64,000 nt of DNA from Styela clava. Taxonomy: Eukaryota. Made by a program: the position numbers and the translations under genes. The notes below the pieces were generated by a model. It had not been told where the DNA came from and did not search any database. It saw only the letters and a program-made list of their open reading frames with translations. The stretch is taken from assembly GCF_964204865.1 (NCBI RefSeq), contig NC_135252.1, positions 11,842,001 to 11,906,000 of the forward strand, given 5' to 3'. Of the stretch, positions 20,979 to 50,511 are shown piece after piece (the first letter of the stretch is position 1; every line of letters begins with the position of its first letter).

Positions 20979-23919
20979 TTACGTAAAAATCAAATAAAAC
21001 AGAATCTGTACAGACAAATAAAATGCAATAGAACTTTGTATGGATATTCTGTTAGCTGCACACTTCACATCAGTGTCACAACAACCAATCTTGCAGTCAC
21101 TGATAATAAAGAATTAAATGCTTATAAAATAGAATATAGACTATAGAGAATTGTCATGCAAATCCTCATGTTCTCTCGTGGAACATTTTTTATTATTTTA
21201 TAGTTATTTAATTATACGAATAATTGACTATTTTAAATCAAATTCCTTACAGATAATCTATAACATTGTCACATACATAAAGCCAATGGCATGGATCTTT
21301 TCTTTGTCGTAACACCAATATTGTAATAGCGCCATAAAATAACAAAATGTTTTTATTAATTGTTTTCTGTATCAGACAAAATTACAGTATTTTCTACACC
21401 AATATCCTATCGACTGATTTTAAAATAAAATCCAAAATGCTGCCACGGAACTTCTAATTATGACGTGACAAAAATGGAGAAAACAAATACAAATTCATTT
21501 CTTGTTTGAATATTGTTATCATGGTCGAAACAAAATTATGATTAAGTCAAGCTTTTTTACAGTGTCAAACAAAAGATGGATTCTATGTATTGGAAGGAAC
21601 ACTTATTTAAAGTCATCTAGTATCTTATATGAAATATGTAAATAACAAACAAAAATTTCTAAATTCATTATAAAATTATTCTCAATTTGAAGAAGATCAA
21701 CATCTATTTTTGACCCGACTAATTTCTTCACAGTGGGATTGTATGATTCGCAAGTTGATTCCGTGCAGTTTATTCTGCTTTTGCATTCCCCAATGATGGC
21801 ATCTCCAGTGACTGTCACTAAATAATTTATAATGATATTACATAATGTTATACAGTATATCTGGCTACAAATATTCTATCCAAAAGTTTCTACTATATAT
21901 ACCTACTTTCGCACGTAAGAATATGTGGCCTAATAGAATGAATGAAACGATATCGTGTTAGTATAATAGCATTTCACTTATGAACTACAACCATAAGTCA
22001 ACCAAAACATTACTTTTTTGCTATTCGTAAGCAAACAATTTTTAGTGAATTACAAATAATATTAAATCAATGATTGAAAATGCTCAATAGAGTGCTTTTT
22101 AGTGTTATACCCTAACGAACCCGCACGGTTACGCAACAAAGACGATGGCATTGATTCCTACTTATCACTCATCGCCATTATGCAGCCATATTGAACCATT
22201 ATTCACCAGTTTACTGCCGTGGACACTATTTTGCTTCTATAATGAATCTCCGCTCTAGAAGACCCTTATTCCCAGTCCCAGTCGTTCTGTCTGTGTATCT
22301 GTGTGTCGAAGCTGTAGCGTCTTTATTTGAAATTTCCCATATTTTTTCGCGTTTCGTCGATAATTAGGATTGCTATTTCCGTTTCTATGGCAGCGACGCA
22401 ATAACGCGTCGATCGTTAGTAAATTTTCAATTTTCTCACAAGTTTTCACCATTTTCGAAAATTCGTATTCCAAGAACGCTACCCTCCGCAGGAGAAAATA
22501 CTCTTTTTAACAAGACATTTTTTATCTCAATACTCCATAAACTGGAGAAGCCTTGGGAATTTTTATGAAAATGATTAATCGTTAGCCACAGTATGCCGCT
22601 CACTCAAGGATACCTATGAGACGCACAGCGCTCAAAACGAATTGGCAGTGTCGGTAACGCGCTCAATGTTATATAGGCTCTGTCCATCCTGGGTAGGCTT
22701 ACCATACGTCCCGCTTTAGGCGGGACAGTCCCGCCTTTTTAGTGTCTTGTCCCGCCGTCCTGACAAGTCAGCTAAATGTCCTGCTTTTGCGTTCAGCCAT
22801 CCAGCATAATACACGAACATGTTCTCGTTACTGTTGTTGCTGTGTAGCGCAACGCTAGCCTACTTACTGAAGGTGAATGCGTTATTTTGTTTGTTTCGTT
22901 GTTTCCCGCTAACATTGTTAGCGAAGTATCACATGTAAAATCAATTCTCATTGGTCCTTTCCGGACGTTCACGTGAATGTAACATTGAGCAACGTCTTTT
23001 TGAAGGTTGTTATCTACAGAAAAGCATGCTTGGGTGAATAAGTAAATTCTCAATGCTTGGGAACGGCAGACTATCTCATTATTCTTTATTCCTTTTGGCT
23101 TTTGCTGTACAAAAAAATCTAAATTCCGATCCTTTGTATCGTTAGCGTCTATTCCTTTATATTTTTCGAATCGAACCCGATATTTAGACAGAGAATATGC
23201 GCATTAACTCTCGATGACAATATGGTCAATGAAGACAGCCGGGATGGCTTTAAATGTAGGTCTGTGTAGTAAAATCGGAAACTGTAAAGTTACAGGATTA
23301 CAGCTAAGGGGTCGTGTCCTTGGAGGCGTCCCGCTTTGAAGTCAAAAAAATATGGTAACCCTAATCTTTGGTACATACCGTCTTGTTATTGCATTGTGTT
23401 TTTCACGAAACAGCACGTTGACGCCATCATGAGAACATAAATCAATTTCAATTCCATTTTAGTAATATAGCGGACATGGACTCCATTTTATTTTATATCT
23501 ATTGGTAGTGAACTTACATAGAGCATAACAAACAATCTTTTTCATACATGTTAACTTAGACACTCTTCATTGGTCTTCTACAGTCTTAGACGAGCAAATG
23601 TGCGAGTATCTTTGGGAATTCCACAATATGAATGACATTTAAGTTATCAACAACAGCGTTTGTAAACCAAATTAGATTATTTTAAAAACAAATACTCACT
23701 CAAGTTCCCTAATGGATAAGACAGAGATGCTTCTACTTGAAGACATACAGCATCCAATCCTAAAGCGGGACAGCACGTTTTCGTTGAGATTTCATCCAAG
23801 TTGAATAAACCCATAGCATCGACCCTGTACCCATGTTGACATCGTCTGGATTCCACGCTAACCACGCAATATACTAGTATGCTTGAAAGATGAAAAATTA
23901 TTCTAAATCCCATAACCAT
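20979..23919 (-). CDS. Three-finger (Ly6/uPAR-like) GPI-type protein A (~159 aa); exon-2 donor defective as assembled, possibly a pseudogene
   Basis: Exons 23919-23700, 21817-21679, 21099-20979. Signal peptide; RRCQHGY..KTCC..AVC..GECKSRINCTESTC..DCKIGCCDTDVKC; hydrophobic C-terminus (IAFYLSVQILFYLIFT*). Confidence 0.75.
22694..23363. mobile_element. hAT (Blackjack-like) non-autonomous element in intron 1 of gene A
   Basis: Ends TAGGCTTACCATA / TATGGTAACCCTA with GTCCCG subterminal motifs; imperfect 8-bp TSD atcctggg/atctttgg. Confidence 0.75.
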
Positions 23920-26662
23920 AATGTTGTTCTATAAGAATACAATTGCTGTTTATGGCATACAGTATTGGTTGGTTCTAAATTATTACCAACTTGTCACGCT
24001 ATTCAATTTAAGACATAGGTAACCTGGGACGCTAAATTGCGGCTTCTGTCCTAAAATTAAAACCCATTATCCAAATTGCAGCCCTATAGCCATTTATGGT
24101 GGCCATCCAAATAGTGATTTTGACCATATATCATATATATATATACCCATCCCCGATACTGAAGTTTACTAAAATGATAAATAGGCTGGGTAGGTAAAAA
24201 TGTGTACCCACAAATCGCTGAATTCAGATTAGTATGCCTTTCTTTTCTTTTGCACTTTGGTTGGTGACAATAATACGTAATACAACATTCAAACTAAACT
24301 GACAACCAGACGAGAGACCCCATATTTTTCCCTATGGGCTATGAACCGCCATTATACGTTTACATGGAATAAATATGGAAATCCTTATACGAGTCGCCAT
24401 TTTGAACAGGTAATTTTACCAGTTGTATAAGGAATTTTATCCGCGATCAGTTCAACCAGAATCCCCTTGTAGATCATATATAGTTCGGAATATCAACCAC
24501 ATTAAGTCTAAATATTACTTAACGGTTTATTATTAAGTTCACAATGAATTTCCCTCTTCTGGCAAAGGTCTGGTGATAATAACAAAAGCAGTCATGTTCA
24601 TGCCAAATATATGATCAGTTTTAGCGCAAGCGTATATAGTGCTTCTATGCGATGCGCCCCGCAACAACAAGTCTGTGAACGACGTGGCTACATATTTGAA
24701 TGGTCAGCCTCGCGCAAATTACCTCCGCATCAGACTGCAATTAACTGGAGCAGGAATTAACTGCAGACTGGAATTCGTCATCTTTTCTCATTCATTTATA
24801 TTACTATCGCTTGGAACATTCAATTGCAATCAGACTAAAACCCATTATACAGCTATGAGAACTTGGGAAAGGGCCTGTGATAATTTTCATCCAGAATAAA
24901 AATGTTTTTGCTTTGGGTGCTACACATCTGCTTTCCACGTTTGTGAGATAAGAAACTGAACTGAAGTTATTAGGAATATTTTGATTTAGAGCAGCGGTTA
25001 CTGAAGTGAGTGAGTTAATGAGATGGCTACGGATGTAGAAGATCGTTTGTTAGTCAAAAACTCGTCCAAGGAAACGCTGCTGGAATTTTTTTTTTAGGAA
25101 ACACTGATTTAGTGTATATATACTGATTTACTCAAACAGGTTTTACAGCTTCAAAATGGAGACGAAATCTGGATATTAAGCAAACTTGAACACTGATTAA
25201 ATAGTATGTTTTTTAGAAATTGGGGATATTAAGCTTCGACCTAAATATTATATTGTTTTGTCTTTGTCGGTCTTAAAATATAAATCGGCAACGATGAGAG
25301 TATCAAAAAGGATAATCCGATACAATTGTTATATTCAGCCAGCAGATAAACTGTACAAGTATAAAATTATGACCTGTCTGTTGTGCAAAACTGTCGGAGT
25401 CCAATAGAAACAGTGTAGGCAGTCGCGATCGCGCTCATATTTTGAATAATTTGAATAATTTGGAGATAGGAAACCGGACATGCAATGATTGCTTTGGTTG
25501 AAGACGCACATTTATAGAATACGTGCAATTAATATGTCTTATGTTTTTAATCAATTTCAGTAAGTCGATGACTCTCATCTTCGAGGATTGACCAAAACAA
25601 ACTTTCTATACATTGTACACAAATCGGCTGCATATTAGTGCTACATTGGTACTTTTTCTGGTTTGTCTTGTTAAATATAGTTCAATATTTGAAGTTCAAT
25701 ATTTGGGTTGCTACTTCAGCGCGAATCATCTATAACGCATCGTCGTAGTCATAGTCATAGTCAAGTTTATTTTTTCCAACCAGTAAAATAATGAATGATG
25801 CAAAAAATAAGCAAAAATTCAAGAACATGATTTTACTGGGGAAGGGAAGCCGTGGGGAACCAAAGTTGGTTATCTAGCAGCGGCACCCAATATTCAACTA
25901 TCTAATTAACATATAATTTTAGTAGATCAATATAGCATAGTATAGTTTAGCCGTAAATATATACTAATACGGTTTAACGAGAAATCGTCATGACACTAGG
26001 GTGTATCTGAGAGCCACGCAATACATCAGATAGTAATTTGGGGTATTCCCCGTTTCGTAGCTTACAGGCAGTGAATAAAAGCGTGTTATGGCGAAATATT
26101 CGGGAATTTGTAGTGGCTCAGTTATCACAACCAAATTATGATAATCATCAGTTGTAGTGGACTGGACAACGGGAGACAATGAAGAAAGAACAGGTATAAA
26201 TGACATAAATCTATTGAAGCAGATGTTTAACATGCCGCACAGTACCGTACCGGTACCGGTAACGTGATGAATAATATTCTATCGTCTGTACAGACGCACT
26301 GGACTGCACAATATAAGTAACAAATAAGTAACAAACAAAGTAACAAATTGTCTATTTATAAGTTATCGCTTCAATAGCCAATATCTGCATTTAATTCTGA
26401 CACTTTTAAAAAATGCGTATGCTGAAACTTATGTCTCGACAACAATTCAGAATTAGTAATAGTTTCGTTTGTGTAACCAAAACATAAATGATTCAACCCC
26501 GTCCAGTTCCTTTGAAATTATTCAACGGCTTGATGCATATACACATTGATTTCGGTTATTTTCATCCGTTAAAAGACATTTTCTAAAGAGTTTATTAAAA
26601 TTATCAACTCAAATATCAAGAAAATTAATCCATTGATAGATTTAATGACATTTTGTTAATGC

Positions 26663-28794
26663 TTAATCAAATTTGAATTCCATATACACTGACAACATTA
26701 TAGCAATGAATATTGCAAATGACGGTGCAATTATTTTCGTCCCAGAAGTTGTAAGGTCAGGAGATTCTGCAATAAACAAATAATATCTTAAAAAGTCGCA
26801 GGAAAAATGCAAATAGAATTTAAAAATCTCCTCCTATTCAATTATCTTTTTAGGAAGAATAGCCCTGCGTCTACTTTTTTTTAATTCACAAAGCAGTTCA
26901 GGGGGGATATACGGTTATTTACATTCCACTCCTTTTTGTTTGTTAACACTGTGTTGGACACGTACCGCGAGGATAAGTAAATGAAACAAGAAAAAATGAA
27001 CGAGTAAAATCACAAATATGTTTTACAAAATATAGCTTTCGTCAAAGATAGAATTTTTATCAATTTTTTCATGTCGTTAAAAAGCAGTGAAGTGCCAGGA
27101 TTACCACATGGGAAGTCGACCCAAATATTATAAATAAAATTCATAGAAATAAACATCTGAGACTGGAAGGTTTGTTTTTAGAATCCACACCATCTGCTTG
27201 ATTGAATACACGCAAGAAAATTAAATTGATCCTTTGATCCTTAAAACGAATTTCAACTCCAAAAATTCATATATACTAATAATTCACTTTTTCACTGATT
27301 TATTATTTACGTATTATTTACGATTTATGTATTATTTACCTGATGCCGTTACGACCGTGGTTTCCGGGCTATCATTCATAATAACGCCATTGCAGCTGTT
27401 AGTGTCGCAGCATCGAACCTCGCACGATCTAAATTAAATCATGTATATTGTAACTCATTGCATCTATAGTTCAAAAATGCGCTTCTAACCAGACATAAAA
27501 TGCTTTCGATTAACTCGTACCACGCCAATAGTGTTGAGGGTATATGTGCATGAATTGTCAATCGGGTCAGATTTTTTACATTGACACGGGATAAATAATT
27601 TGGGACTTGGATTGGGTGAACCTTTTACACATCTGGTTGAGACATATATATACTTGAATTGTACCGTACTCGATCGGTGCTCAATTTATGAATAACACTT
27701 GTATGAGTAAATTATTTTTTAAATGCAGCGGGATAATTTAGTAAGTAGGCCTGTGCACCCCAGTTTGATGTTTTCATGTCGAGTTGATTATTACCCTATA
27801 CTGAATAAAAAAAACCAAAATACTTGATTGAATTTTGTATATATCATATGGAATCTACAATAAATATCAAAAGAGGCGCGTTAAAGTCTATATTACCGTT
27901 GGAGTAGTCCGCGAGTAAGAAACTTTGGCTTCCGAATCTGTTCAAGAATTTAGGGCAAAACGTTTTTTTTTTTTTCAGGTAAGGCGGAGCATCCTATGCA
28001 ATACAATGTAACAATTCATCTAATATTGTGTGGTTTGTAAGACGAACTGGAATACAGCTTTGAATTAGTTACAAATGTTGAGATCTTACTTTATCAGTAC
28101 TTCATCTGCTTGGATACCTGATGCGTAGTTGAGTAGCGTGTCTTTGTAATCATCGCATGTTATTTCAGTGCAATTGCTACGAGGATGGCAATTCATATAC
28201 ACACCCTGTGCATCTTATAAAGAACACAATAAATATATATACAAGATCAGAAACAATTCAAATGTTCTGGTTTATTATTTACACCATTTGCCCAAAAATA
28301 TAAAAAAGAAAGTTTGACTCGTATTAAAGATAGAAAGCAATAGAAAATCACAATCTATATATATCCATTAATAACAGGTATAGTTACTTGTTTATTATCA
28401 CATAATAAGTTAATAATTTGTTAATCAGAAAATAGCACTTTGATCTTGAATAACAGTGGAGCATTTTCATTTTTGAACTGAATTCCATCAGTCCTTCAAA
28501 GTTATGCTAGGTCGCAATGTTAAATATATGATAATTTTCAGAGGGGCGTTTTCGCTATCAATTCGCTTTATGGAACTTACCTTTTATTACGTTCAATGAT
28601 ATCACTACCTCCATTCGGAAACATACAGGATCTAGCGTCATCCATGTCGTGCAATTTTCGACGACTGTACTTCTGTTTTCTGATATGTCCGGAATTGTTA
28701 GTTCATAACCCAGTTCACATTCAATACCTTGTACAGGATTGAAATCGGGACAGCTAACAAACATATACAATATTAGGAGATCAAGTCGAGGCAT
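26663..28794 (-). CDS. Three-finger GPI-type protein B (~176 aa)
   Basis: Exons 28794-28581, 28213-28090, 27428-27340, 26766-26663, in frame. IECELGY..ENC..PVCFR..MNCHPRSNCTEITC..SCEVRCCDTNSCN; short S/T stalk; hydrophobic tail. Confidence 0.88.
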
Positions 28795-29452: not shown

Positions 29453-29562
29453 GGACCTCCAGAAGTATGTCCACCAAGATGGCGCACAACCTAAACATAG
29501 TAGATGTTCCCGGTTAGGGTTCAGGTTGTGCGCCATCTTGGTGCACATACTTCGGGAGCGCC
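29453..29562. mobile_element. Merlin-like MITE (short form)
   Basis: Palindromic, GG...CC termini, flanks caaaaaac/caaaaaat; absent at the paralogous site ~36125. Confidence 0.8.
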
Positions 29563-30522: not shown

Positions 30523-30618
30523 TCAAAAGATAACAATACAGACAACCACAAATATATCTTCGGGTAGCGCCAATGTATAAAGAACAAAGGAAGATGAAAT
30601 TATATCAAGTCGAGGCAT
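30523..30618 (-). pseudogene. Collapsed chimeric mini-ORF 1 (gene-B start fused to C/D-type tail), 31 aa
   Basis: MPRLD (as gene B, with B-like upstream DNA) joined to IISSSFVLYTLAL (as gene C last exon). Confidence 0.7.
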
Positions 30619-31269
30619 TGCAAGTCAGGATATTATGCCTTAGAAAACTGTATTCATTGACAATATTATTATAAAATTACTAAGTTTTTCATCGGTTTGT
30701 TCAAGTTTTATATCGTACTGAATCATTAATCATCAATTTCATTTCGTTTATGAGCATATGGAATGATGATGCATATGAGTATAACTTGAACAATAAAATA
30801 CAAATTTTGTGCCGATATCATTAAAAATGCGCCCACAAAGCCGAGTTTATTGATAGTGGTGAAATGTTTCGTATGTGTGTCCGCAGTTATCTGTGTGTTC
30901 AGTATCCATTCGTTTTTGTTTATGACCTCATTACCGATCAGTCAGTCGACCGCAAGCTATTTTGAAGATTTTAGTCGATCGCGGTCAAAGCAGGTTGGCC
31001 ACCCCTGATTTAGATCATACAATTCAGATTTGTGACCTGCCTAGTTTTTAGTCGTAAGTGTTGAAATTTCATCTTGCTAAGTGTTATCTAAACTGCAAAA
31101 AAATAAATATTCTCAAACCATGATTGTAAAATTTGAACAATAACCATTTGCTAGACTAAGTATGATCTGCAAATAGAATATGTCTTTCATAACTAAAGAT
31201 GTAGACGGGGTTTACACAATTATTCTCGCTCTTTGCATAAGTGAGATACGTCAATGAATGTTTCAAAAC

Positions 31270-33097
31270 TTAGCATATTAAGCAAAGTAGAGCCAATATA
31301 TAGAGAACAAAGGAAGATGAAATTATATCAGTGCCGGATGTTGTTTGTTCCTGTCCAGCCGTTGGTGTCGAAATCGGCGTTTCTGTAACAAATAACTTCG
31401 ATTATTTATAAGATACTGTTGTAAAATTTTCAATGACGAGAAACTTACTTGATGCATCCTCTATTACGCTAAAGGAACCTTCAGTAGAAAACTTTGCAGC
31501 GTCGGTTGTCTCTAAAGCTTTAGTTGTAAGTACCACAGGTCCGAGTAGATCCATCATGTTAATGTAATCTTCATTGCATTTGTTGGTGTTGCAGCATCCA
31601 ACAGAGCACGTTCTATCATCAGAAAATGCAAATCATTATGTAAAACCTGCGTAAAGCTATTTACATATTAGATATCTCGTCTATCAGAATCTCCCTCGTG
31701 TCTTCTGCCAACTGCGCCCTAGTTCGCTTATGCATTTTTACCTTGATTGCCACCTAGCTTCCGATATTTATCAGCTTTTACTCTTACAGTTTAATAGACT
31801 GTAGATTATTGACGCATTTCATGATAGTCGCTTAAATTGAGGGTAAATCATAAGTAAGTTTGATACATGCTCGATGCTCATCAGAGTTCACACATCAGAG
31901 CAATTTTATTTGGTAATAATAACCCTTGTATGAGAGAAAGAGATTTATTTTTTTTGTCAACCGAAATAAAATACCAGTCATCGTAATAATAATAAGTAAT
32001 AAATTAGTTTGGTATAGACAGGAGGGAGTGATACGACCAAACGGTCATCGAAGTCATCTTCCCCGTGGAAGCCGAAGGTACTTTATACTCATAACACTGT
32101 TAGATATAAGGTTATATGTTTATTATTGCGAAAAGGTTCTCACGTGATGTCAATGTCTGAAATACTACTGCCAAAGCTCGACGCTTGCAATTCTTGGAGT
32201 ATTAGTTTTTTATATTGGCCGCAAGTTTGTTCAGTGCAGTTGATACGAGGGTGACATCCACTATACATGGCCTCTCCACCTGAAAAAATATTAAGTACCT
32301 ATCATATTTTTAATAGGCGAGCGTGGGATTTGATTGTACAATAAAGTGAATGTATCATGAATATTCAAAGCGATTTTTGATTCATTCTTAAAAATATAGC
32401 TCAAACCAATATGTTTCTCTACTCAGTCCATAGTACAGGACACAACGGCAAGGAGTCAAATGGACCGCTATCAGCATATATATCATAGGTAATTTATTCA
32501 AACCAAACCGCTATTTTGCTATTGGGTAGATAAAACAGAAGCGACATTTAACATATAATGAGAACTATAAAGCAACAACACAAAATAGTAAATTGGTAAT
32601 GAGTAACGTCGAGTGAAAGCTGGATAAATGGGCTTCGACGGGAATACATGTAGGATGGTACATGATAAGCCAGTTTCGTGGAATGAGTTTGGTAAAAGTT
32701 CTGATTTTGTTGACACAGTCCTGTTGTAAGTGGACTTATGAATAACTACATAATAAAAAGAGCAATCAAGTTCCTCAGTACCACAGGTCCTCTATAGTCA
32801 TCTGTTATTACACGACTATGCTGCTCCAAGTGAAGCAACAACTGATTTTACTGAACAACTTAACTTACTGATTGTGAACCCGTGATATGAAATACTGGCG
32901 GTTGATTCAATCCGAAAACACACAGGATTCGAGGTTGTCCACTCTGTGCAGTTCCCTGTGGTTATACTCGTCAGACCACTTACAAGTGACGAAGTAGATG
33001 TTACTTCATATCCTTGTTGGCACTCTATACAATTGACCACGGTCATCTCAAAAAGCAATATCGATGCGAAAACCGACTTCCAGTATTGCCTCGACAT
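31270..33097 (-). CDS. Three-finger GPI-type protein C (~213 aa)
   Basis: Exons 33097-32869, 32279-32144, 31612-31449, 31382-31270, in frame. IECQQGY..GNC..PVCFR..SGCHPRINCTEQTC..TCSVGCCNTNKCN; S/T stalk; tail IISSSFVLYILALLCLIC*. Confidence 0.9.
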
Positions 33098-35306: not shown

Positions 35307-35378
35307 TCAGCATATTGAGCAAAGTAAAGCCAATATATAAATAACAAAGGTAGATGAAATTATATCAAGTCTAGGCAT
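35307..35378 (-). pseudogene. Collapsed chimeric mini-ORF 2, 23 aa (MPRLDIISSTFVIYILALLCSIC*)
   Basis: Gene-B-type upstream region and first codons fused in frame to a C/D-type terminal exon and its 3' UTR (~35150-35306). Confidence 0.75.
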
Positions 35379-38300
35379 TGCCAGTTCGGATATTATGCCT
35401 CATAAGGCACAACTATTTTCATTGACAATATTATCATAAAATTACCAAGTATATTTATGAAGTCACTCTGAAAAATGTTAAGACAGAGTATTTTCTATGA
35501 AATTCTTTCTCATTTTCAAACAATCATCGACTCATCAGTGTAAGAAAAGTCCTATTCTAAAGAAAATACCATGCAGATCTAATCAACTACAAATTATATA
35601 AGAAAAAATATGAGAGCGATGCTCAAATATAAAAAAATAAAAGTAATAGCCTTCTAGCGGGAAATACAATCTTAACCATTGAAATTTCGAAGCAATTGGT
35701 TCAGTATAGGTAATGAAAAAAGCGATTTTTTTTTCGTAACAACCAAAAAAAGAAAAGAAAATTCTAAAAACGACAAATATCAAAACGATCTTTATGTCAA
35801 TTTCGTGTCCGAAGATGACAACTGATTTTTCGTTACGTAGGCAGTAACGCTATGATCACACAGAACTGACATTCTCTAACAAAAGCTCTATTGTTCAATT
35901 TTAGTAGGTCTTTATAATATAACGAGGTACTGTGAGTTAATTAGTGCAATCGTAGTTCCGGATATGATTGATAAAAATAACAGAAAAGTAGTGTATATAT
36001 TTCATTTTTAAACTTTTCTCACCAAGCTTCCGTACTAATATATATGCTAAATCCCAATGCTAATATCAATAAAATTCCAATCATCTTTGAATGATATTTT
36101 GCCAGTAGAAATCATACAAGATACAGAAAATGATTGAAAATGAACGGTTTGACAATAGAAGTAATTGCAAAATGCAAGTAATATCTGTCAACAAACCACC
36201 ATCGTTAAACGAGAATTTCAATTAATTATCTTGAAATCCTTCATTCTTGGCAGCTTTCCTCATTCTTCGTGGTATGTACATTTTCACCTTGTGAAAACCA
36301 TTAAATGTTTTTCATTTGTTTGTTTGAATTTTATATCGTACTGAATCATTTTTATATTATTATTATATAATCAATTTTATTTCGTTTCTGTGCATATGTG
36401 TTTTGAAAAGTGTGCTTCATCGTTTTGAACAAAGAGCAATTCAGGGTTGTTGAATTTGACTATTTGATGTTACCGTAGTGTCGCACTTATAAGTAAAATG
36501 TATCTCTCTCGATTTCAGCCATTGTAGTATGATTGCTTTTCCAAAAATAGCTTTGTAAAAAGCTAAAAAATGAAGCATCAGATTTCCTAATGTGAAGATA
36601 CACAAGAACACACAATGAAACAGAATTTCCTAAAAAAATTTGTTGTTTATTACGTCCACAATCAATGATGTAAATATTCCAGATCATAATTTTACCCTCA
36701 CGTGTTTGGTACCTTTCTGAACACAACAAGGTGGATATAAATCTGTTTTATTAGGGCAACAAAGTTTAATGCTAAATTACAAGGACTTCGCCAACGGAAC
36801 TAGTTACGATCCCGTTCAATATTACTGTACTTTACAGTACCATGTTCGGAATAAATTTTAAAAAGTAGCGACACAGATAATCAGATATATATATATCTTT
36901 GAGTATCAATGATGTAATACGTTGCGTATAGTCTACTGATCTGATGAAGCTTTGATGTTAGATTGTTGGTTAGTCATAAAGGATTGCGCATCCACACATT
37001 GTCTTTATAAAAATTTGAATAGAATAATATGTCTTTCATAACTCATGCTTAACGAAAGATGTGGACGAGGTTTATACAATTAATCTCTTTCTTTACATGA
37101 GTGAGATACATCAATGAATGTTTCAAAACTTAGCATATTGAGCAAAGTAGAGCCAATATATAAGGAACGAAGGAAGATGAAATTATATAAGTGCCGGATG
37201 TTGTTTGTTCCTGTCCAGCCGTTGGTGTCGAAATCGGCGTTTCTGTAACAAATGACTTTGATTATTTATAAGATACTGTTGTAAAATTTTCAATGACGAG
37301 AGACTTACTTGATGCATCCTCTGCTACGCTGAAGGTACCTCCAGTAGAAAACTTTGAAGCGTCAGTTGTCTCTAAAGCTGTAGTTGTAAGTACCACAGGT
37401 CCGAGTAGATCCATCATGTTAATGTTGTCTTCATTGCATTTGTTGGTGTTGCAGCATCCAACAGAGCACGTTCTATTATCAGAAAATGCAATTTATTAGG
37501 TAAAACCTGCGTAAATTCATTTACATATTAGATATCTCGTCCATCAGAATCTCCATCGCGTCTTCTGCCAACTGCGCCCTAGTTCGCTCATGCATTTTTA
37601 CCTTGATTGCCACCTAGCTTCCGATATTTATTAGCATTTACTCTTACAGTTTAATAGACTGTAAATTATTGACGAATTTCATGATAGTCATATAAATTGA
37701 GGATTAATCATTAGTAAGTTTGATACATGCTCATAAGGGTTCACACATCAGAACAATTTTATTTGGTAATAATTACCCTTATATGAAGGGTACGATATAC
37801 TCATAACACTGTTAGATATAATGTTATATATATGTTTATTATTGCGAAAAGGTTCTCACGTGATGTCAATGTCTGAAATACTACTGCCAACGCTCGACGC
37901 TTGCAATTCTTGAAGTATTAGTTTTTTATATTGGCCGCAAGTTTGTTCAGTGCAGTTGATACGAGGGTGACATCCACTATACATGGCCTCTCCACCTGAA
38001 AAAATATTAAGTACCTATCATATTTTTAATAGGCGAGCGTAGGATTTGATTGTACAATAAAGTGAATGTATCATGAATATTCAAAGCGATTTTTGATTCA
38101 TTCTTAAAAATATAGCTCAAACCAATATGTTTCTCTACTCAGTCCATAGTAGCCTACAGGACACAACGGCAAGGAGTCAAATGGACCGCTATCAGCATAT
38201 ATATCATATGTAATTTATTCAAACCAACCCGCTATTTTGCTATTGGGTAGATAACACAGAAGCGACATTTAACATATAATGAGAACTATAAAGCAACAAC

Positions 38301-40040
38301 ACAAAATAGTAAACTGGTAATGAGTAACGTCGAGTGAAAGCTGGATAAATGGGCTTCAACGGGAATACATGTAGAATGGTACATGATAAGCCAGTTTCGT
38401 GGAATGAGTTTGGTAAGAGTTCTGATTTTGTTGACACAGTCCTGTTGTAAGTGGACTTATGAATAACTACATAATAAAAAGAGCAATCAAGTTCCTCAGT
38501 ACCACAGGTCCTCTATAGTCATCTGTTATTACACGACTATGCTGCTCCAAGTGAAGCAACAACTGATTTTACTGAACAACTTAACTTACTGATTGTGAAC
38601 CCGTTATATGAGATACTGGCAGTTGATTCAATCCGAAAACACACAGGATTCGAGGTTGTCCACTCTGTGCAGTTTCCTGTGGTTATACTTCTCAGACCAC
38701 TTACAAGTGACGAAGTAGTTGTTACTTCATATCCTTGTTGGCACTCTATACAATTGACCACGGTCATCTCAAAAAGCAATATAGATGCGAAAACCGATTT
38801 CCAGTATTGTCTCGCTATCATAGTTATATATATATATAACAAGTCTCACATGTAAAACAATCTAAAACCTAGTTGTAAGGTAATTATTTGTAAAATTTCG
38901 ATAAAACTGATACCTGGATGGCTGCACCCTAATAAACCACCGCATTCTTCAGATTTTTCCCATTTGCGAAAGCTATTAAACATATTATAAATCAGAATTA
39001 GTTTCTAGTGATCATCACACGACTTAGGAAAACATATCTGACGACATGAGGGAAGGCTGAGTCGATCTTGTCAGATATCATTAGTCATTGCACGTTTCCC
39101 ATATACCAAGGGTGGCCAACCCGCTTCCAACCGCGAACGACTGAAAAGTTCCGACTTATCAGTATTAACGTCATACACAGAAACGAATGAGTACTGAATA
39201 TGCAGTTAACTGCACAAACGCATACACAAAATTCCACCACCACCAATATACTCGGCATTCTTAATAAAATCGCCACAAAATTTGTATTTTTCATGCTCCA
39301 TTTTACATTGACAAAAAAATTTTTTTCCCGGCCCCAAATGTTCTATGACTGTTCAAACATCGGTATATAATTTACAATTTCCTTCAAGTCCGATTTTTTT
39401 ACTCGCCTGGAATTATATACGCTACCGCCACCGTTGCAAATAAAATAGAGTGTGACCAAAACATTCGCGTACCGCAGAAGTTATTGAAGGATCGCTTTTC
39501 AGTCAAGTCACACGATATTCGACACGTTGGTTTCTAAACCTTGCTAGCGTGAGAACTTGCATTTGTTAATTCTTACGTGATGTTCGATTTGCCCTCGCAC
39601 GCCTCATACATTTAGCCACTTATATTTCTCTATCATCTTACCAATCCCAGACAAATTATGTTCTATCTTCATTACTGTTTTATTTCATGTTTATAGTGAC
39701 TCATTATTGCGCCATAGTAAAGACTTAGGGAGTAAAACTTTTCGCCCTGGTTTTGAGATAACGTGCTTCTTATCCTTTTTTCTCTGCGATATACTATACT
39801 AGTATAGACTATTAGTTAATGAATTTTATTATCATTCTTTAATTCCATCTTTCTGCATAATTAAGGAGTACTTGAGCACTGTAGAAAATATACCTCGAAC
39901 AATCGGATATGAGCAATACGATTTCGGATGTGATGTTATGCGTTTGCTATACCCACAACAATCAGAGTTCACAAATGATCTCGATGTTGTTATTGTTACT
40001 CTCTGCGTTGTGACTTTACCACACATACCATATTTTGATA
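35370..40040. repeat. Segmental duplicate of ~28780-34940
   Basis: Collinear shared blocks (gaagtcactctgaaaaa, accaccatcgtt, ttgtagtatgattgctttt, whole C/D gene, cggatatgagcaata...accacacataccatattttgataa). Confidence 0.85.
37130..38821 (-). CDS. Three-finger GPI-type protein D (~214 aa), recent paralog of C
   Basis: Exons 38821-38590, 37995-37860, 37472-37309, 37242-37130, in frame; near-identical to C. Confidence 0.9.
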
Positions 40041-41040: not shown

Positions 41041-41827
41041 GACTATGGAATTAAATCGGGTTGAAGTTTTATAATATTTTTAATTTACGGTAGTTGTTTC
41101 ATCTAGATCAGAATCGTGAGTTGAATAAAAAGTTTCACCAATGATATGAAAGTCAAGAGTTGATTTGTATGGACGAATAGTTTAGAATTTTTAACAGGTC
41201 AAGTCAAATAAATATATCTTTTTGTATTTGGATTTTGTTACATTGTTAAGCATTCATTTGCAATATATGTCTAGATTGTTCATTCACGCATTTATCCAAA
41301 ATTCAATTTTATAACTCAATAATCAACCAAATAACGGAAGATTATGAATTTTCTGTGCTGGACCCGACGGCTTAAGTCTACGAATACTGTTATTAGGATT
41401 CGTGTTTTGCATAACAATGCTTTATGCATTCCTTTGCGGTCTCGCCTACCCGTTGGCCGTTACTCATATCCAAAATGTACTACTGAAAGGGATAAACTTA
41501 AAAACAAACAAAACCCAGTTAGGAGTCTTCCTGGTAACTATCCCTTTCCTTTTTTTACAATGATGTTTCTCGAATTGTTTCTCGTGTCTCGTGTAGTCCG
41601 CATTCTGCTGACTTGCATATATATATCATATTGGCCTATATATTTTCTTGGAAAATCTTTTGAATATCTATTTACTATAGATTATGATGCTGCGATGTTG
41701 TTTTTATCGAAAAATCGAAAAACTGTCGCTCAGCCGCCCTTTGCAATTGACTTAAGATTGTCTATTGATTTTCCAAATACCATATTCAAATATCAGTGAA
41801 TGCTAAAAAAAGACTGTCATTTATGCT

Positions 41828-43666
41828 TTACTTTTCAATATTATTCAATACAATCAGACGTAACAAATAATACGTAAGAATGTGTGCAAGCAGTCGAGTT
41901 TGCATAAACACTGAATGGCCATTAGATGTCGTTGCAATATCAGTGGGTGTTGTGGTCTGTTCATTAGTCATACTGGCAATTGTTGCATTGTTGCAGCTGT
42001 CCGTTGAACAACATTCATATTCGCAACTTCTAAAAATAAAAAAAACAGCAGAACCAAAATGAATGGGGTTATTTTGTTATTACTGTTTATGTTGATGTTT
42101 AGCATATAGTCAAAAATATGCATACACAGACAAGTCATTTACGTATAGTATAGAGCCAGGCAAATATACATGTACAATCAACTTAATATACATGTACAGC
42201 CATTTAAGTGATGTACATACACATAAAATGACATTCGCATATATATTTGATTTAATGTGATGTACAGTCATCCAAGTAATGAACGTATACACAGAAAATG
42301 TCATACGCACATAGAGCCAACTCAATAAACATATACATCCATTTAAATGGTGTACCGTGCACATATAAAATTCAATGTCATATACATGTACAACCAACTT
42401 AAAATGCATTAATGATGTGCATACAAACGATAACGTCATATGCACTTTTGTGTAAAAGTAGATTGCAACCTCCTTTACGTATTCATCTACAACGTTCGTC
42501 AAATTGGTATGCATCGTTATGCGCAACTACGTACAGACGTGCCACTGATGCTTGTTTCATAGCAATTTAGTACATCTACTTTACACTACACTTGGTATGA
42601 TAATTTCTAATATTTCGATCAAAAGCCGTTCTGGAGTTTCTGTGAACGTTTTAACGCACTCATTGCGACCGATCATCTGCAATGGGATGATATGACTTCT
42701 GAGATTACGACTTCCCATATATATCTATAAATCAGCTGCTACAAGCTGAATCATTATGAACATAACATGTAAATGCAAACGTTTTAATATACAATATACA
42801 TAGAGTGCATGCATATGACAGGTTGCCGGGGTTGGATGTATTTGTATATCACCTAAATGGCTGTATATGTAAATTTGGTTTGCTGTATATGCTAACTGTC
42901 TTAAAGATGGGAATGACAACAAGTGATATCGCATATTTCGTATGCATTCGACTATACATATAATAGTTTTTAAAAATTTGAATGTAATACTGCAAGATCT
43001 GGAAGAAACTTCAGTAAAATTGTATACAAATTGGGAATTTGGAGGAAATATTCGTTACGTTCAAATTTTTTTCTGTTTATAAATCCTTACTTGACTATAT
43101 AAGATCCAAGTAGGTTAGATCCAATTTGTTCAGTAATAACCTCAGGCGCATAAGATGTACAATTTACCGTGTCGCAGAAAGCTGTTGTAGAGCAATTTGC
43201 AAATGCTACCTTCAAGTCAGGAATCGAACTTACTGTGGAAATACCTAGAAGAATTATAAAACAGTGCACTAGCTGAAATCCAAAGATAAACCAGGTGAAT
43301 ATATCAGCTCGTCAAAATTAAAATTATACAAGAAAATTTAAAATAATCACGTTGGGTGAAATATATTGTGAAGGCAATGACAAATAGATGCCAGATAGAT
43401 TCCGCTACGGATAGATTTCTATATAATAACCGGATGCGTATCAGTGACTGCTTGATTGAAGACTTGTTCGGAATGAAAACGACTCACCAAAATAACAGTC
43501 GGTATAGTGCTTTACCTGCTACAGCCTCTATTCGTAAGCATGTTACATCATCTTCTTGTCCACAGTCAATTTCTAGTATAGTTGGAGAAGTAGATAAACA
43601 TTTCAACGAGTGAATTACGCGAAAGAAACATAAAATGACAATGAAAATAATTTTCCCAAATAGCAT
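41828..43666 (-). CDS. Three-finger GPI-type protein E (~168 aa)
   Basis: Exons 43666-43516, 43244-43091, 42029-41828, in frame. LKC..IDC..VTC..ANCSTTAFCDTVNC..SCEYECCSTDSCN; Thr-rich stalk; moderately hydrophobic tail. Confidence 0.87.
42110..42930. repeat. Degenerate CATATACAGCC-rich repeat element (related copy at ~20000-20330)
   Basis: Iterated catatacagcc/ggctgtatatg motifs in both orientations. Confidence 0.6.
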
Positions 43667-43899
43667 TTTGTAATATTGATATTTGGATGAAAGACTATCT
43701 AATCAGATTACAATATCGAGATTTTGACTAATTATACCGCCTTGCATAATCTGTAAGTAAAATCAGGGTATTTTTAAAATATGTAACATGAACGAGGCGT
43801 CCTATCAAATTGCGTTCTTTCTGTCTGTGTCACTAGTGAGGTATGTAAAAACAATAGTATTAGATTTATTGTACAGATGGCATTTGATCATCCACAAGA

Positions 43900-44080
43900 A
43901 TAATACATCAAATATGATTGACTCACAATTGGCGCCTAAACTGAAGACTCTTTCCCATCAACGAAATGTTGCGTCTCTGTGCTTATTTCAAAAACATTTT
44001 ACCAGAATTTATTTCGGTCGTATTCGCTTGATTGCGAGCTCTCACGCTCACTCTCAGTATACCCACCAGACAAACGAACT
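43900..44080 (+). mobile_element. CR1-like LINE ORF2 C-terminal remnant
   Basis: LKTLSHQRNVASLCLFQKHF resembles the LSHRRNVASLSLFYKY motif at the end of invertebrate CR1 reverse-transcriptase ORFs. Confidence 0.6.
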
Positions 44081-45725
44081 TTTATGCCGAAAAGTTTATC
44101 CAATAATACATTTTCAAACTGTCAATTGTCAGCTCAATCGGTATACTTACGCGTACCACCACCACAATTCCATACAGTTTAGATCGCTTTTCAATAGCCC
44201 CTAACCTCGCTTATAGATTATTATTCTTCACTTCTTGGTGAGTGCGGATGACCTTGCTTTGGGTAAATTTTCCGTAAACAAATATCTGATGTCATTTGAC
44301 GCATCATCAGATGATACGTTGTCAATTATTTGTATATGCATACGGCGAAATACAAGCGTTGTCAGATCATCAATTATTCGGAGACACAATTACCTTAATA
44401 TGTTTTGGCTGAAACATCCTTATTCATAAAAGGAATCACGGCAAACATTTACAACACTTTTTACTGCGTTACAGTTGGTCTTTTACATAGCATTATTACT
44501 TTCCAATAAAACGGTGTCCGGTCCTAGTAACTTTGCGATGAATCCATCAGGCCTCAATTTGCTATAAATATGCTACTATCTAAGTAACTGTGATATCTAT
44601 TCATTTGCACAGGTACTAGTCACGCACCGTGACTTCCCATTCGGAAATCGCGTAAATTGCGTCTTATTCTAAGAGCCTCCGGCCAGTAGCAATTTGCCAG
44701 TCACGCATGGGCTATTTAGGCATACCACAAATAAAATGACAACCTGCTCATTATTTCAAATTTCTTTGCAAATATCAGAGGTATTAAAAATCCTTTGCGC
44801 TTGATTGTTACACCATACTGATCAAATCAAAACAACCACGGGCACATATTCAAGATCAAATAAATATTGAAATAGTTATAATTGTGGGGCAATCCTATTG
44901 ACATGATATGAGCTATACATGTGAATCTACACTACCGTGGATAGGTCTGTTGATACCAATGATCATAAAACGCGAAGGTCAAGGTTGTTGTTTTTTAATC
45001 AGTAATTGTTTAGGTATTTTTATTTCATTTATTGCATCTGTGAGGGCCAAAACAATATATGGTATCGATAAATTGACTTTGCATTTGTAAGACTTTATGG
45101 GCATCCTATATATCACAAGGATAGTCGATAAGAATAAAAAAAAAAAAAAACGTTAAGCACATGCTGACAGTTTACCGCTTAGCATAATGATTTTCACAAA
45201 CCCAGTTGGGTAACCAGCATCGACATTGTAGTGTAGTGAACTCCGGAGTTTCAGAACTCCAGTCAGAAATAGTGACCAGAACGAATATAATATTGCTTGT
45301 GAAGGACATATTGAAATGGTATACATGAATATTTCAATTCAATAACTATGGAAACATTTCAAAAATGACCAATATCCTAAGCATTACCCCTTTCAAGATA
45401 TTCAAAGATCCAGAATATCAATCAAATATTTATTACCATTCATCCCTTTTTGTAAATAAAGTACATGGTAAATATATGGTTTATGAGACTGTGTTTGTTT
45501 GTTATATACTATGTTCAGAAATAGGTATTGATAATACAAGAGATAATGCAAGGCACAAAAATATGTATCCAATGGTCAATTTTATCATAAAAGCATCTTC
45601 GATTATGAAATTGAACTATCGATTCATATATATATATATTGTGAAACCCATAGTCTTTTTTCAAAATAATATACAATTTCTCGAACCATTCTCGGCTATG
45701 TCACTATTATAATCTAATATGTAAC

Positions 45726-46653
45726 CTACAGAACTAGCAACAACAAAATAGAGTACAGAGGGTAAAACAAGCTTGGTGACTTGAACATCGAACCGCTTCC
45801 TGACGTGGTGAGTTCTTCTCTTCCATCTGATGTGGTGAGTTCTTCTCCTTCATCTGATGTGGTGAGTTCTTCTCCTCCATTTGATGTGTTGAGTTCTTCT
45901 CCGTCATCTGGTGCGGTGAGTTCTTCTACTCCATCTGGTGTGGTGAGTTCTTCTACTCCATCTGATGTGGTAGGATTCGCGTTTTCAACAACAGGTTTAG
46001 TTTTGGTTTCATCTGTCACGTCACTGACCACAACAACTGTACCTGGAGTTGATTCAGAAATTGGTGTCGTACTTTCCATAGAAACGCTGTTGCAATTGTC
46101 TGTAGAGCAGCACGAAAATGTACAATTTCTAAAACAAAGAAAAATTTATTTGTAGTAGTAGTATATTGTAATAACAAATGTTCGTAAATAAGAGATTTGA
46201 TCTTACTCAATAACAACACCCGGAAATATTTTTGCAGATTGATCTTTTGCATATTCTTTGCATTTCATCTCGTCACACTGTGTTTTCGTAGAGCAAGAAT
46301 CAAACGTCCTATATTGTGTCCCACCCCCTTAAAAATAAAGTCTTCCGTTAGCACTTTTCAGCTTACAATTAAGTATCTTTGGAGTATTTAGACCAGCGCC
46401 TCTCTCAAACCTAATCATACCTTGTTTGGCAACTTTGTTGAAGAAAAACTTTTGAAGCAGCAAAAATAAGTAAAAAACCCTTACCTAATGAGATTACTAC
46501 GTCCATGTGTAAACAAGTTGTAGTGGTGCTCGAACAAAGGGTTTCTTGCGGGTTGCTCGTCAGAGAGGTAACAGCGCATTTCAGCGAACTGCCTTTCTCA
46601 GAAAGTATGAAGATCGCTAGCAAAGCAATTTGTCCACGCAGCATTTTAACCAT
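45726..46653 (-). CDS. Three-finger GPI-type protein F (~230 aa) with acidic 27-bp-repeat stalk
   Basis: Exons 46653-46485, 46327-46207, 46128-45726, in frame. LKC..TLC..TTC..DSCSTKTQCDEMKC..NCTFSCCSTDNCN; six DGxEELTTS repeats; tail LFYPLYSILLLLVL*. Confidence 0.88.
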
Positions 46654-48687
46654 ATTGTAGTGTTGAATTTCTGAAATAAGTAGAGACGCTATGAAAAAAG
46701 TTTGTATAAAAATACAAGATCTCGGTTTTGCCTAACAGCATTTGTAAACTCAAGTTTAACCATTCTTCATCTACAAAAAACATTTCTGGTCTTATTCTCT
46801 GTTGTTTTCCTAGACACATTGTAGCTCCCCTGTTTTATCGAGTAAGGAAATATTCATGGAAGCAATTTCACCGCTTTTTCAAATCGTGAGTTGCGTTATG
46901 TTTTTTAGATTTGACGCATGCGCCTGTGTGATGACCATAATATTAAAATGAGTTTACCAACATATTTACTCGGTGATATATGCCTGAAATACATGTAAAT
47001 TTCAAGCATATTGACAAATTTCCGGTTAGGGCCGAGTTTTTCGAGAAATACAATGACTCAACAGTTGTCGCTTCCTGTTATTCAGGGCAAAATGTTAATT
47101 GACCATGATATTATATTCTACAAATCTACAATAGCCAAAATCACTGATGAACATCTATTCTACACGATATAAAATAATTAGGTCAATTCTGGTAACAGAC
47201 ACCAAAATGCTATTTATCAAGACTAATGAAATGAGACACATTTGAGAAGTAGAACAATCTATTCGACCCATCCGCATTGAAGAATTATCCTATCAATTTT
47301 TCACATATTTATATTTACATAGATCATTAAAATTGTGCTCAAGCAAGTGCTGGAATAGTTTTGGCATAATTTCATTTTTATTCTGTATCCGATATAATAA
47401 TTCGTTCAAGAAGTGGCGTTATAGATATGTGTTGACGGTGTGTCTTTTCTAATATATATATATATCAAAGATTTACCCCCAACACATATTTTCGAAGCCA
47501 CATACATCAGAGTCGGAGTGAAGATGACTTAGGTTAGTAGCCAACAGTGAGATAAACTTTAGACGTTTATTTATCTTCAATGTCTCATCTAGTGGCAAGT
47601 CAGCGAGTGTGAAAGCTACCCCAAAAAACACCCCGCCACCATTAAAATAAAAATATAATAGTAATTATCCAGCAGTTAGGGTTAGGAAAACAAATTGCGC
47701 AGAAAATTTAAATTTCAAATCGTTTCTAACATGAACCCTAACTGAATAATTACAAATTTTCTATCTAATACGAGGCTGAAGTATTTTTCTCAAATGTCGC
47801 ATTTTTTTTAATATAGTGGCGTTGGCTTTCTACAAAAGATCCCAATTTTATTGTCTAATATGCAATAAACTTCGTGCGTATGGGATAAGTTTCTGTCTAG
47901 TGTGTGTTTCGTAGCAGTGAAATTTCTACATGAAACAAAATTTGTCCTTTTTACTTTTAAAGAGGCGTGCGCACCCTTGACTTGCCCGTTAATGTTCTTA
48001 CCAAATTTGAAAAATGAGCTGGTTGGCTGAACAAAATTCATACCACTGTGGCGTATATTTGCAAGTAAAATGTTATCACTATTGACATATGATGTATGCA
48101 TTAATTTATGAACAAGGAAGCGATAAACACGAAGTACGAAGTCACAGTAGACTACCTAAATCGCAGTCACCTGACCACTGACGGGAACACGGAACCGCCG
48201 GGGATTGCGCAATTTTGAATTTGATGACGTTCTTGCACAAAAAAATGAATCCACTAGATCCCACAGTATTTTTTAAAATTAATAACAGAAATAGTCTTCT
48301 AGCGAAAATGGAATTTTCAACCACTGCAACTTTGAAGTAATTGGTCCGGTAGCTAATGAGAAAAGCGATTTTTCCACAAAAAGACGATAAAATAATTACT
48401 TACAAGAACAACAACATATTACCAAAGCCATTCATGTGTACATTTTGTGTCCAATAATTCGACATAAACGTGACACCATAGAAATGTGATTAATACTGTA
48501 TTAAAAGAGACAGAGCGTGAAAGGAGACAATAATACATTAGGTATACAAAGTTTATATTTTAATAAACAAAACAAAAAAGTAAAAACGTTTTTTTTGGTC
48601 TGAGCAGTTAGAATAATTAATTCCAAAAATCCTTTATAACTTTTTTATTCATATGAACTGTGAGTATACAAGTAAGGTAAACGTAAT

Positions 48688-50511
48688 TTACGAGAAAACA
48701 TTTAGAATCAGCGAGATACAAAATAAAATTGGTATCCCAACATTTGACTGCACAATAAAAGTTGTAGAACCAGAAGATGTTGTTGACATTTTGTATTTAT
48801 CTGTAACTACGTTTTGAATTGAAAATTTGTTTGTGATACTTTCGCTCGAACTATCCGTTGAATTCGATGTTTCCATTGTTGTTATCAATATCGAAACCCT
48901 TGGCATATTTTCCGTAACTATGAAAGCATCATCAAATGGTGGAGAATCCCCGGAAGATTTTGACTTTTGATTTGCAGCCTTTGTGAACACGGGTGATTCA
49001 TATATAGTTTTGTCGGTTTGTACAGAAAGTGCAGAGATGGGTATTGAGGCGGTACTTAAAAACTCGTTTAAAGTAGTTTGAACATTTGTGATTGTAGAAT
49101 CAGTTGTGCGATTTACCTCGTCAGTATTGAAACTTTGACTCACAGTTAGATTACATGTCCCCGAGATTGTCAGTATCGGCAATGTTGATAGTGATGTCAC
49201 AGACGATTGTTTGGTCGGTTTCGTTACAGTTGTTGGGAGAATTTTCGGCTTCTCCGTTTTTGGTAAAACCGTAGTAGTTATAGGGAAGTTAGTTGAGTGG
49301 ATTCTATTTGAAAGAAAAGGCGTAGACGTCTTGGGGTTTTGTAGCTTACCCGTGCCCCTGGTAGAAGGTGTAGTTTGAATTGTTCGTGGTGGCCTGGTAG
49401 TTCTGGGTTTGAAGCTACCATTTTTTGTTCTTCCCTTTCCAGTGGCGCCATTTGAATTGCAATTATCTTCCTCGCAACATGCGATTTTGCAATTCCTGTT
49501 ATAAATGTAGTTCATACAACCAATAAAGATATTGTTTTTCCTGTTTATAAGAAAAGTTACATACTCCTACGCATCTACCTAGTATAAAAAAAATTATTTC
49601 GAGTTGACATAGATAGCAATGAATGTCTACACGAGTCTATAGCGCAAATGACTCATGCTTGAGCCTGTTGAAATTTTAGAAAGTTGATTTTCCACTTCAT
49701 TACTTAGCACGTTGCACCACGTTATATATTCGAGCCTGAACGTTAGGTAATTACCATTACATATTTCTTACTTTGAAGCACTCAAGACTTGAGGACTTGA
49801 GGCTCGGAATCTTGCTCCCATCGACGATTTTATGAATTCTTTAGATGTCGCACATGTCAATCTAGAACATCTTACTCGTGCAGAACACGCGTAATATATA
49901 GCTTTTCCGGAACCTACATTAAAACAAAGAATTAACAAGAAACGGATGCTCAAATATATGGACACGAAAGCCAAAACAAAGAAGTACGGGTATGCAATCT
50001 GTCACATGCAATCTGAGTAGACCACAGGCACCGCAATCTTCACGGATCACGACTAACGCGGACGCGTCACAAAGTGCGCAATTTTCGATGACGTCCTTGA
50101 ACAGCAAAACAGATTATATGGAGCCCACAGAATTTTTAAAATAAATAAAAGTAAAATCTTCTAGCGAAAAATACAATCTTCAACTAATGAAAAGTTCAAA
50201 GCAATTAGTCAGTAGTAGATGAGAAAAGCGATCAAATACAATACTATCGATTAAATACAATATCGATGATAAATTACCCACTTTCGCAGTTCAGATATTT
50301 TAACGAAATTATATAGAAACTCACCTTCAACCGTGGAGGTAATCTTCATACACGCAGGACGTGGTATTGATACGGGACATTTTTTCAATTTTTGCGTTTT
50401 TATTGTGACTGGTGAGTTACTGGATATCGACTCGTACCCCACCTGGCATTTTAGGCCGGCAGTCCACTTGACTGCAATGCACGCAAGCAGAATGCGATAC
50501 AGAAATTGCAT
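48688..50511 (-). CDS. Three-finger GPI-type protein G (~378 aa) with long mucin-like stalk
   Basis: Exons 50511-50325, 49913-49772, 49495-48688, in frame. LKCQVGY..KKC..PAC..YACSARVRCSRLTC..NCKIACCEEDNCN; ~240-aa S/T stalk; tail IPILFCISLILNVFS*. Confidence 0.9.
49960..50235. repeat. Dispersed repeat family member (related copies ~29070-29290, ~48130-48380, ~35640-35790; inverted at ~55730-56040 and ~10400-10560)
   Basis: Shared motifs gtacgggtatgc..cgcaattt..gatgacgtc..cttc[ct]agcgaaa..agcaattgg..gaaaaagcgat. Confidence 0.6.

Follow-up and report, generated by a model that had tools for sequence, protein, structure and literature searches.

Three-finger proteins rank with the most versatile modules for extracellular binding in animals, with roles that range from the control of complement and the modulation of receptors to lipase transport, limb patterning and the binding of sperm to egg; lineage-specific clusters of Ly6-type genes are common in animals. 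Cell identity and the recognition of gametes are among the possible roles, as Prod1 and Bouncer illustrate. Of all living animals, tunicates are the nearest kin of the vertebrates. Genes of the Ly6/uPAR (LU) type are compact, with few exons, and occur in tandem clusters; typically exon 1 encodes the signal peptide only and the last two exons encode the mature protein (PMC4839075). The disulfides of CD59 pair residues 3-26, 19-39, 45-63 and 64-69, with a fifth, 6-13, in finger 1 (PMC4839075). A 2026 survey of invertebrate LU proteins was made without tunicates (PMC13719153), and a literature search revealed no paper on genes of this kind in Styela or any other tunicate. Here we describe a locus of Styela clava in a window of 64,000 nt (NC_135252.1, 11,842,001-11,906,000; positions below are window positions), which has an AT-rich, eukaryotic composition. 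The window carries seven genes, named g1 (high coordinates) to g7 (low coordinates) and lettered G to A in an earlier sequence-only reading, which very probably form a tandem cluster of single-domain three-finger genes encoding surface proteins of the glycosylphosphatidylinositol (GPI) type on stalks. Six of the genes look intact and g7 is doubtful.

Seven same-direction genes and the transcripts of two of them

A six-frame scan of the whole 64 kb revealed exactly seven occurrences each of the motifs C-x5-C-x4-C and C-x3-CC-x4/5-C[N/A], minus-strand throughout and alternating along the gene order, plus one unrelated chance match. Assembly with GT-AG introns gave seven minus-strand genes in the same direction at 20979-50511, with uninterrupted reading frames of 147-378 amino acids. 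All seven of the co-oriented, split-exon genes proposed from sequence alone could therefore be modelled, and the interval proposed for them runs exactly from the g7 stop to the g1 start. The ten cysteines of the encoded domain, arranged as C1..C2..C3..C4-x5-C5-x4-C6..C7-x3-CC-x4-CN, are conserved in position in 7/7 genes. Intron 1 (phase 1) lies between C3 and C4 and intron 2 (phase 2) directly before C7 in every gene; exon 1 encodes the signal peptide and C1-C3, exon 2 C4-C6 and exon 3 C7-C10. The predicted succession of a phase-1 and a phase-2 intron was thus found throughout, but it was incomplete as an intron set, since a third, phase-1 intron is present in g4, g5 and g6 and assigns the last part of the stalk, together with the hydrophobic tail, to a separate exon 4.

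The longest product, of 378 amino acids, is encoded by g1 (48688-50511; exons 50511-50325, 49913-49772 and 49495-48688) and comprises a signal peptide, the 10-Cys domain, a 235-residue Ser/Thr stalk and a hydrophobic tail. It is followed by g2 (45726-46653; 230 amino acids; exons 46653-46485, 46327-46207 and 46128-45726), which has acidic repeats of 27 bp in its stalk, and by g3 (41828-43666; 168 amino acids; exons 43666-43516, 43244-43091 and 42029-41828). The four-exon genes are g4 (37130-38821; 214 amino acids; exons 38821-38590, 37995-37860, 37472-37309 and 37242-37130), its tandem duplicate g5 (31270-33097; 213 amino acids; exons 33097-32869, 32279-32144, 31612-31449 and 31382-31270) and g6 (26663-28794; 176 amino acids; exons 28794-28581, 28213-28090, 27428-27340 and 26766-26663). 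The deviant copy g7 (20979-23919; exons 23919-23700, 21817-21715 and 21099-20979) exists as a model only and would encode 147 amino acids if spliced.

Comparison with RefSeq revealed that at least five of the seven genes are listed there, each as an "uncharacterized protein". The models of g2, g4 and g5 were identical to XP_039268564.2, XP_077966977.1 and XP_077967105.1, respectively; the exon-1 donor of g4 and g5 had been set at TCA/gtaagt (the slash marking the exon boundary), which is the site used by RefSeq and lies 27 nt beyond our initial placement, before identity was compared. The g6 model agreed with XP_077966732.1 (166 amino acids) except that RefSeq begins at the second Met. The first 155 residues of g1 were identical in the older RefSeq model XP_039268564.1, which supports the domain. 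For exon 3 of g1, the acceptor at 49495 was chosen because this older model and the paralogs use it; an acceptor at 49540, which would bring an 11th Cys, was rejected.

Transcription was examined with contigs from four public runs of three studies, placed on 41700-47600, the region of g2 and g3. The contigs were joined without introns and had GT..AG ends at the joints, which identifies the runs as RNA. Both splice joints of g2 were present in contigs of 4/4 runs. The joints of g3 (42029/43091 and 43244/43516) were found as modelled in three runs from three studies, with a transcript extending over 41818-43743. The exact joints of these two genes confirm the spliced structure that had been proposed. 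Expression of g3 differs between samples, since it was absent in run X3 and present in run X4 of the same study.

Three further transcript features were observed. An internal donor in g1 exon 3 (CACGG/gtaagc; 49345-49379) is joined on the minus strand to an acceptor in the 5' untranslated region (UTR) of g2 (46672) in a read-through product; in run X3, a single RNA contig has 29 nt from g1 exon 3 placed ahead of g2, and XP_039268564.1, an older isoform of 394 amino acids with two LU domains, has the same g1-to-g2 join. A short multi-copy element at 44852-45245 reached very high summed depth in the RNA contigs of 4/4 runs, many of which run on into dissimilar DNA. A dispersed repeat within or beside the g2 3' UTR is the probable explanation. 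RefSeq also lists an isoform X1 of g4 (235 amino acids), in which a different exon-4 acceptor, in the region of exons 3 and 4 (37130-37309), shifts the frame and the hydrophobic tail is lost; if real, it would be a secreted form.

Cysteine framework, predicted fold and probable surface architecture

The successive Cys spacings in the seven spliced models were 11-23, 6-9, 17-25, 5, 4, 13-28, 3, 0 and 4 residues. Six of the seven genes end the domain in CC-x4-CN; g7 reads CC-x5-CA and has an extra Cys, in keeping with the slight deviation that the sequence-only reading had noted for this copy within a shared framework. The same reading had reported the classic N-terminal CxxC to be missing, and indeed no gene (0/7) carries a CxxC after the signal peptide, the first Cys spacing being 11-23 residues. 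By position and order, C1, C2, C3, C4, C5, C8, C9 and C10 fit the eight core cysteines of three-finger proteins. C6 and C7 bracket an insert in finger 3 that has a helix in the predicted model described below, and we infer that they form a fifth disulfide, which would span the base of finger 3, whereas that of CD59 and Ly6 lies in finger 1. The full set of putative pairs is C1-C3, C2-C4, C5-C8, C6-C7 and C9-C10.

Structure prediction was carried out with AlphaFold2. A model of the g2 protein made without an alignment was poor (predicted local distance difference test [pLDDT] 48.6) and was set aside. Two alignments were also discarded: A3, built from one full protein and exon fragments, had all exons piled on the same Cys columns, and A5, which included multi-domain proteins, was unusable. 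Alignment A7 combined four RefSeq paralogs with exon fragments of g1, g3 and g7 and had all Cys columns in register. With A7, the g6 protein (XP_077966732.1) gave a mean pLDDT of 71.9, with 76-90 in the domain, and a model in which two beta-hairpins precede a helix, placed after C6, and a last strand carrying C7-C9. When this model was compared with 48,161 representative chains by VIA-align, ranks 1-30 were all three-finger proteins (Z 4.4-7.1) and spanned model residues ~13-120. The scored matches included GPIHBP1 (Z 7.1), Prod1 (6.5), CD177 (6.5), SLURP-2 (6.4), TEX101 (6.3), CD59 (6.3) and Lynx1 (6.0), as well as toxins (5.2-5.6) and the receptors TbRII (5.4), ALK1 (5.1), ActRIIB (4.5) and ActRII (4.0). 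The nearest clusters in a language-model comparison all belonged to the three-finger clan. Sequence searches of the PDB with the g2 protein, a profile and the g1-like older RefSeq model gave only weak matches to alpha-neurotoxins (E 0.5-8), and these agree with the fold, as do sub-threshold Pfam matches to CD59, Activin_recp and DUF7773. The three-finger fold is well evidenced because a single fold fills the whole top of the list and covers the whole domain. Taken together, these predictions are good evidence for a three-finger (LU) fold, as had been expected from the letters.

Analysis of the protein ends revealed hydrophobic segments at the N-terminus and at the extreme C-terminus in 7/7 genes, with no cytoplasmic part; small residues (TTSG, SGSGS, AAN) lie 7-12 residues ahead of the tail. 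The proposed GPI-type architecture of signal peptide, stalk and terminal hydrophobic tail is therefore present as judged by hydrophobicity, and the proteins would be GPI-anchored. The shortest stalk has 5 residues and the longest 235. The Ser/Thr-rich stalk that had been assigned to every gene was found in g1-g6 (28-36% Ser+Thr) but not in g7, which is nearly stalkless with five residues only. The stalks are probably mucin-like and O-glycosylated. That of g2 contains, at 45800-45971, acidic units of the form (D/E)G(x)EELTT, for which 6.4 copies of a 27-bp repeat code; matches of g2 to CPAP (the CPAP/SAS-4 G-box) and malate synthase in sequence searches of the PDB were due to this repeat and were dismissed as spurious.

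Several observations weigh against a cluster of GPI-anchored LU proteins. No Pfam model was matched at threshold by single exons or RefSeq proteins, and the sub-threshold matches were to DUF7773, CD59 and Activin_recp. Alignment A7 is small, with 12 rows of which eight are exon fragments. A Foldseek search of the g6 model against the PDB found nothing at E <= 0.001, and all structural Z scores lay below 8, which the tool's own caution treats as middling. Signal peptides and GPI signals were called from hydrophobicity, and the charged residues with which the tails of g3 and g6 finish are less typical of GPI signals. UPAR_LY6 and Toxin_TOLIP were not among the Pfam matches at E <= 10, and DUF7773 was found neither in this genome nor in the literature. 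The sequence-only reading had expected annotation based on open reading frames (ORFs) to miss these genes; RefSeq already holds most of them as described above, and the expectation applies instead to recognition of the domain, which fails in Pfam.

The sub-threshold matches bear on two other readings. The first holds that the proteins are kinase-less, GPI-anchored relatives of the ectodomains of activin/BMP type II receptors, acting as decoys or co-receptors for TGF-beta-family ligands. Activin_recp (PF01064) scored 15.1 bits with the g1 domain (E 0.048) and 9.1 bits with g2 (E 3.6), below the cut-off of 20.9 bits, and did not match g4, g5 or g6. The nearest named language-model neighbours were the Activin_recp and TbetaR2 ectodomain clusters (0.81-0.83), and scores under 0.9 are leads only. 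The ActRII ectodomain has a three-finger fold and the pattern C-19-C-9-C-17-C-6-C-5-C-11-CCC-4-CN, with two Cys pairs across finger 3 and an aromatic residue after C4. In the Styela family, the number and order of the ten cysteines resemble this pattern, as do the final CC-x4-CN and a further Cys pair in finger 3. However, C7 here stands three residues from CC, where the receptor has CCC; the residue after C4 is H, S or K, with no counterpart to the receptor's aromatic; and the proteins, of 147-378 amino acids and ending in a hydrophobic tail, have neither transmembrane helix nor kinase. TGF-beta-family receptors also matched less well in structure (Z 4.0-5.4) than GPI-anchored LU proteins (6.0-7.1). 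PF01064 matches in the Styela genome itself comprised one type I receptor and one unrelated locus, and provided no type II comparator. Judged by structure and by Pfam, the family stands closer to GPI-anchored LU proteins than to the ectodomains of receptors. We consider this first reading very unlikely, and slightly less likely still the more specific proposal that an offshoot of the type II ectodomain tunes TGF-beta-family signalling as decoys or co-receptors held at heights set by the 5-235-residue stalks.

The second reading is that of CD59-like complement regulators, GPI-anchored LU proteins that shield their own cells from pore-forming complement. CD59 was among the best structural matches (74 residues, root-mean-square deviation 3.0), and a helix in finger 3 is present both in CD59 (PMC4839075) and in the g6 model. 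CD59 also gave the best Pfam score of any LU model, spanning the whole domain (E 0.076), but its 13.1 bits fall far under the cut-off of 33.9. The finger-1 disulfide of CD59 is absent here, seven very divergent paralogs on stalks of such different length are unexpected for one conserved regulator, and none of the present evidence bears on complement. A complement role is very improbable in our view, to much the same degree as the receptor reading, and single-domain LU proteins of the GPI type continue to account best for the cluster.

Divergence, selection and possible gene decay

Apart from the g4/g5 pair, the paralogs shared 14-40% identity, in agreement with the extreme divergence described from sequence. 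The sequence-only reading had gone further, proposing a diversifying family for recognition at the cell surface. In a fuller form, this proposal is one of polymorphic molecules for gamete or self/non-self recognition under diversifying or balancing selection. Divergence outside the Cys frame is consistent with it, as are the variable expression of g3 and the variation seen in g2. RNA contigs carried six coding single-nucleotide variants of g2 (T38S, L39P, T44N, T45A, T72A and T127A), all nonsynonymous (6, with 0 synonymous) and four of them in finger 1, together with an in-frame 3-nt deletion, and g2 differed at six residues in the older RefSeq haplotype. These all-nonsynonymous variants are suggestive of diversifying selection, but the 6:0 ratio is not significant, as there are ~3.4 nonsynonymous sites per synonymous site and the ratio is expected by chance at ~0.2. 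Styela clava is generally very heterozygous. The tandem duplicates g4 and g5, which have ~92% DNA identity and lie ~5.7 kb apart, gave a synonymous divergence (dS) of 0.095 and a nonsynonymous divergence (dN) of 0.031; dN/dS was 0.33 overall and 0.22 in the domain, which indicates purifying selection, on few changes. Selection of the diversifying kind was thus not shown, and that part of the claim is not upheld. A role in polymorphic recognition seems unlikely, though less so than either of the two readings above; for none of the three does the support go beyond resemblance.

The state of g7 raises the question of how many copies work. Its exon-2 donor site reads ATTGA/gaataa, where the paralogs keep GT (for example ATTGA/gtaaga in g2), and only a weak in-phase GT (GG/gtcaaa) lies upstream of the lost donor. 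Because the donor and the Asn of the CN ending are lost and an odd, unpaired eleventh Cys is present, g7 may be a decaying copy or pseudogene. The cluster as a whole might then be a birth-and-death array in which not all seven genes work. The changes in g7 favour such an array, as do two collapsed remnants inside the cluster: one at 30526-30624 (minus strand), in which a g6-type start (MPRLD) is in frame with a g4/g5-type hydrophobic tail, and a second like it, a 23-residue ORF at 35307-35378 (minus strand) in the duplicated unit downstream of g4. Their composition points to unequal crossing-over as their origin. A RefSeq protein for g7 was not retrieved, but this is not evidence of its absence, since the word-indexed search scored 8000 candidates only. 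Against decay, all frames of the g7 exons are open, the start, signal peptide and hydrophobic tail are kept, and the in-phase GT upstream could stand in for the lost donor. We regard decay of some copies as a real possibility, somewhat short of probable.

The extent of the family was examined at the level of the genome and of protein collections. Exon-1 and exon-2 profiles run against the whole 377-Mb assembly recovered the seven window copies (E 1e-10 to 1e-30) and no further copy below E 0.001. A phmmer search with g2 against 1.84 billion cluster representatives gave eleven matches, ten of which were to the acidic repeat and were set aside as compositional. The remaining match, to the Cys domain (E 3.3e-6), was P0006, a protein of 380 amino acids from a Logan transcript assembly. 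P0006 has the similar frame C..C-x6-C..C-x5-C-x4-6-C..C-x3-CC-x4-CN; it differs in that three domains stand in tandem and a hydrophobic tail is lacking. A search of the S. clava genome did not find P0006, and its match to the family profile was modest (hhalign probability 47%, E 2e-4). The g2 phmmer search did not recover the paralogs, so that failure to find relatives with this query is weak evidence that there are none, and a word-indexed search with the g2 domain, a method that needs shared 5-mers, returned only itself. Protein searches with these queries revealed no close relative in other species. The cluster has so far been seen, with these queries, only in Styela clava, which accords with the lineage-specific origin that had been suggested.

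Three features of the neighbouring DNA were also recorded. Below g7, intergenic DNA at 18932-19227 holds two copies, 98% alike, of a 147-bp unit. On the minus strand at 14592-17396 lies a mucin-like open frame of 934 amino acids with ~68 copies of a 42-bp repeat (14 residues, rich in Pro, Thr, Ser and Glu), and downstream of it, at 12665-13660, are two ORFs with Cys patterns resembling trypsin-inhibitor-like (TIL) domains. The mucin-like frame and the TIL-like ORFs probably belong to a separate, secreted mucin-type gene adjoining the cluster.

Proposed mode of action and comparison with described systems

By inference from the family, we propose that the products act in the manner of GPI-anchored LU proteins. 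The N-terminal signal peptide would direct entry into the secretory pathway, where the disulfide-rich three-finger domain would form on its Ser/Thr-rich stalk and the hydrophobic tail would be exchanged for a GPI lipid anchor. The exposed fingers would then bind an extracellular partner protein. This partner could sit on the same cell, the LU protein acting as its modulator or co-receptor, or on a different cell or particle. The cluster itself probably grew by tandem duplication and unequal crossing-over. Understanding of the superfamily is unchanged by these genes; what they offer is a version of the module that goes unrecognised by current domain libraries, with intron positions of its own and, putatively, a fifth disulfide located in finger 3. 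Annotation of tunicate genomes would gain from a profile of this family, and the seven genes are candidates for studies of surface recognition.

Among described systems, the GPI-anchored Ly6/uPAR proteins (CD59, Lynx1, PSCA and the LU domain of GPIHBP1) are the most similar. They share with the Styela products a signal peptide, one three-finger domain, the CC-x4-CN ending and a GPI-type tail, they include the best structural matches, and their genes are likewise small, few-exon units in tandem clusters. In contrast, the Styela genes have no N-terminal CxxC and hence no finger-1 disulfide, and they carry an extra Cys pair in finger 3 and long mucin-like stalks; their exon 1 also encodes C1-C3, and g4, g5 and g6 have an exon 4. 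Short and long snake alpha-neurotoxins have the same eight-Cys core without the finger-1 disulfide and were the only, weak, sequence matches in the PDB. Snake three-finger toxins differ in being secreted, with no stalk or anchor, and in those that have a fifth disulfide it is found in finger 1 or 2. Salamander Prod1 and fish Bouncer are comparable as taxon-restricted, GPI-anchored proteins with a single LU domain, Prod1 being the second-best structural match (Z 6.5); no sequence relationship to either was detected, and their Cys frameworks differ from the one described here.

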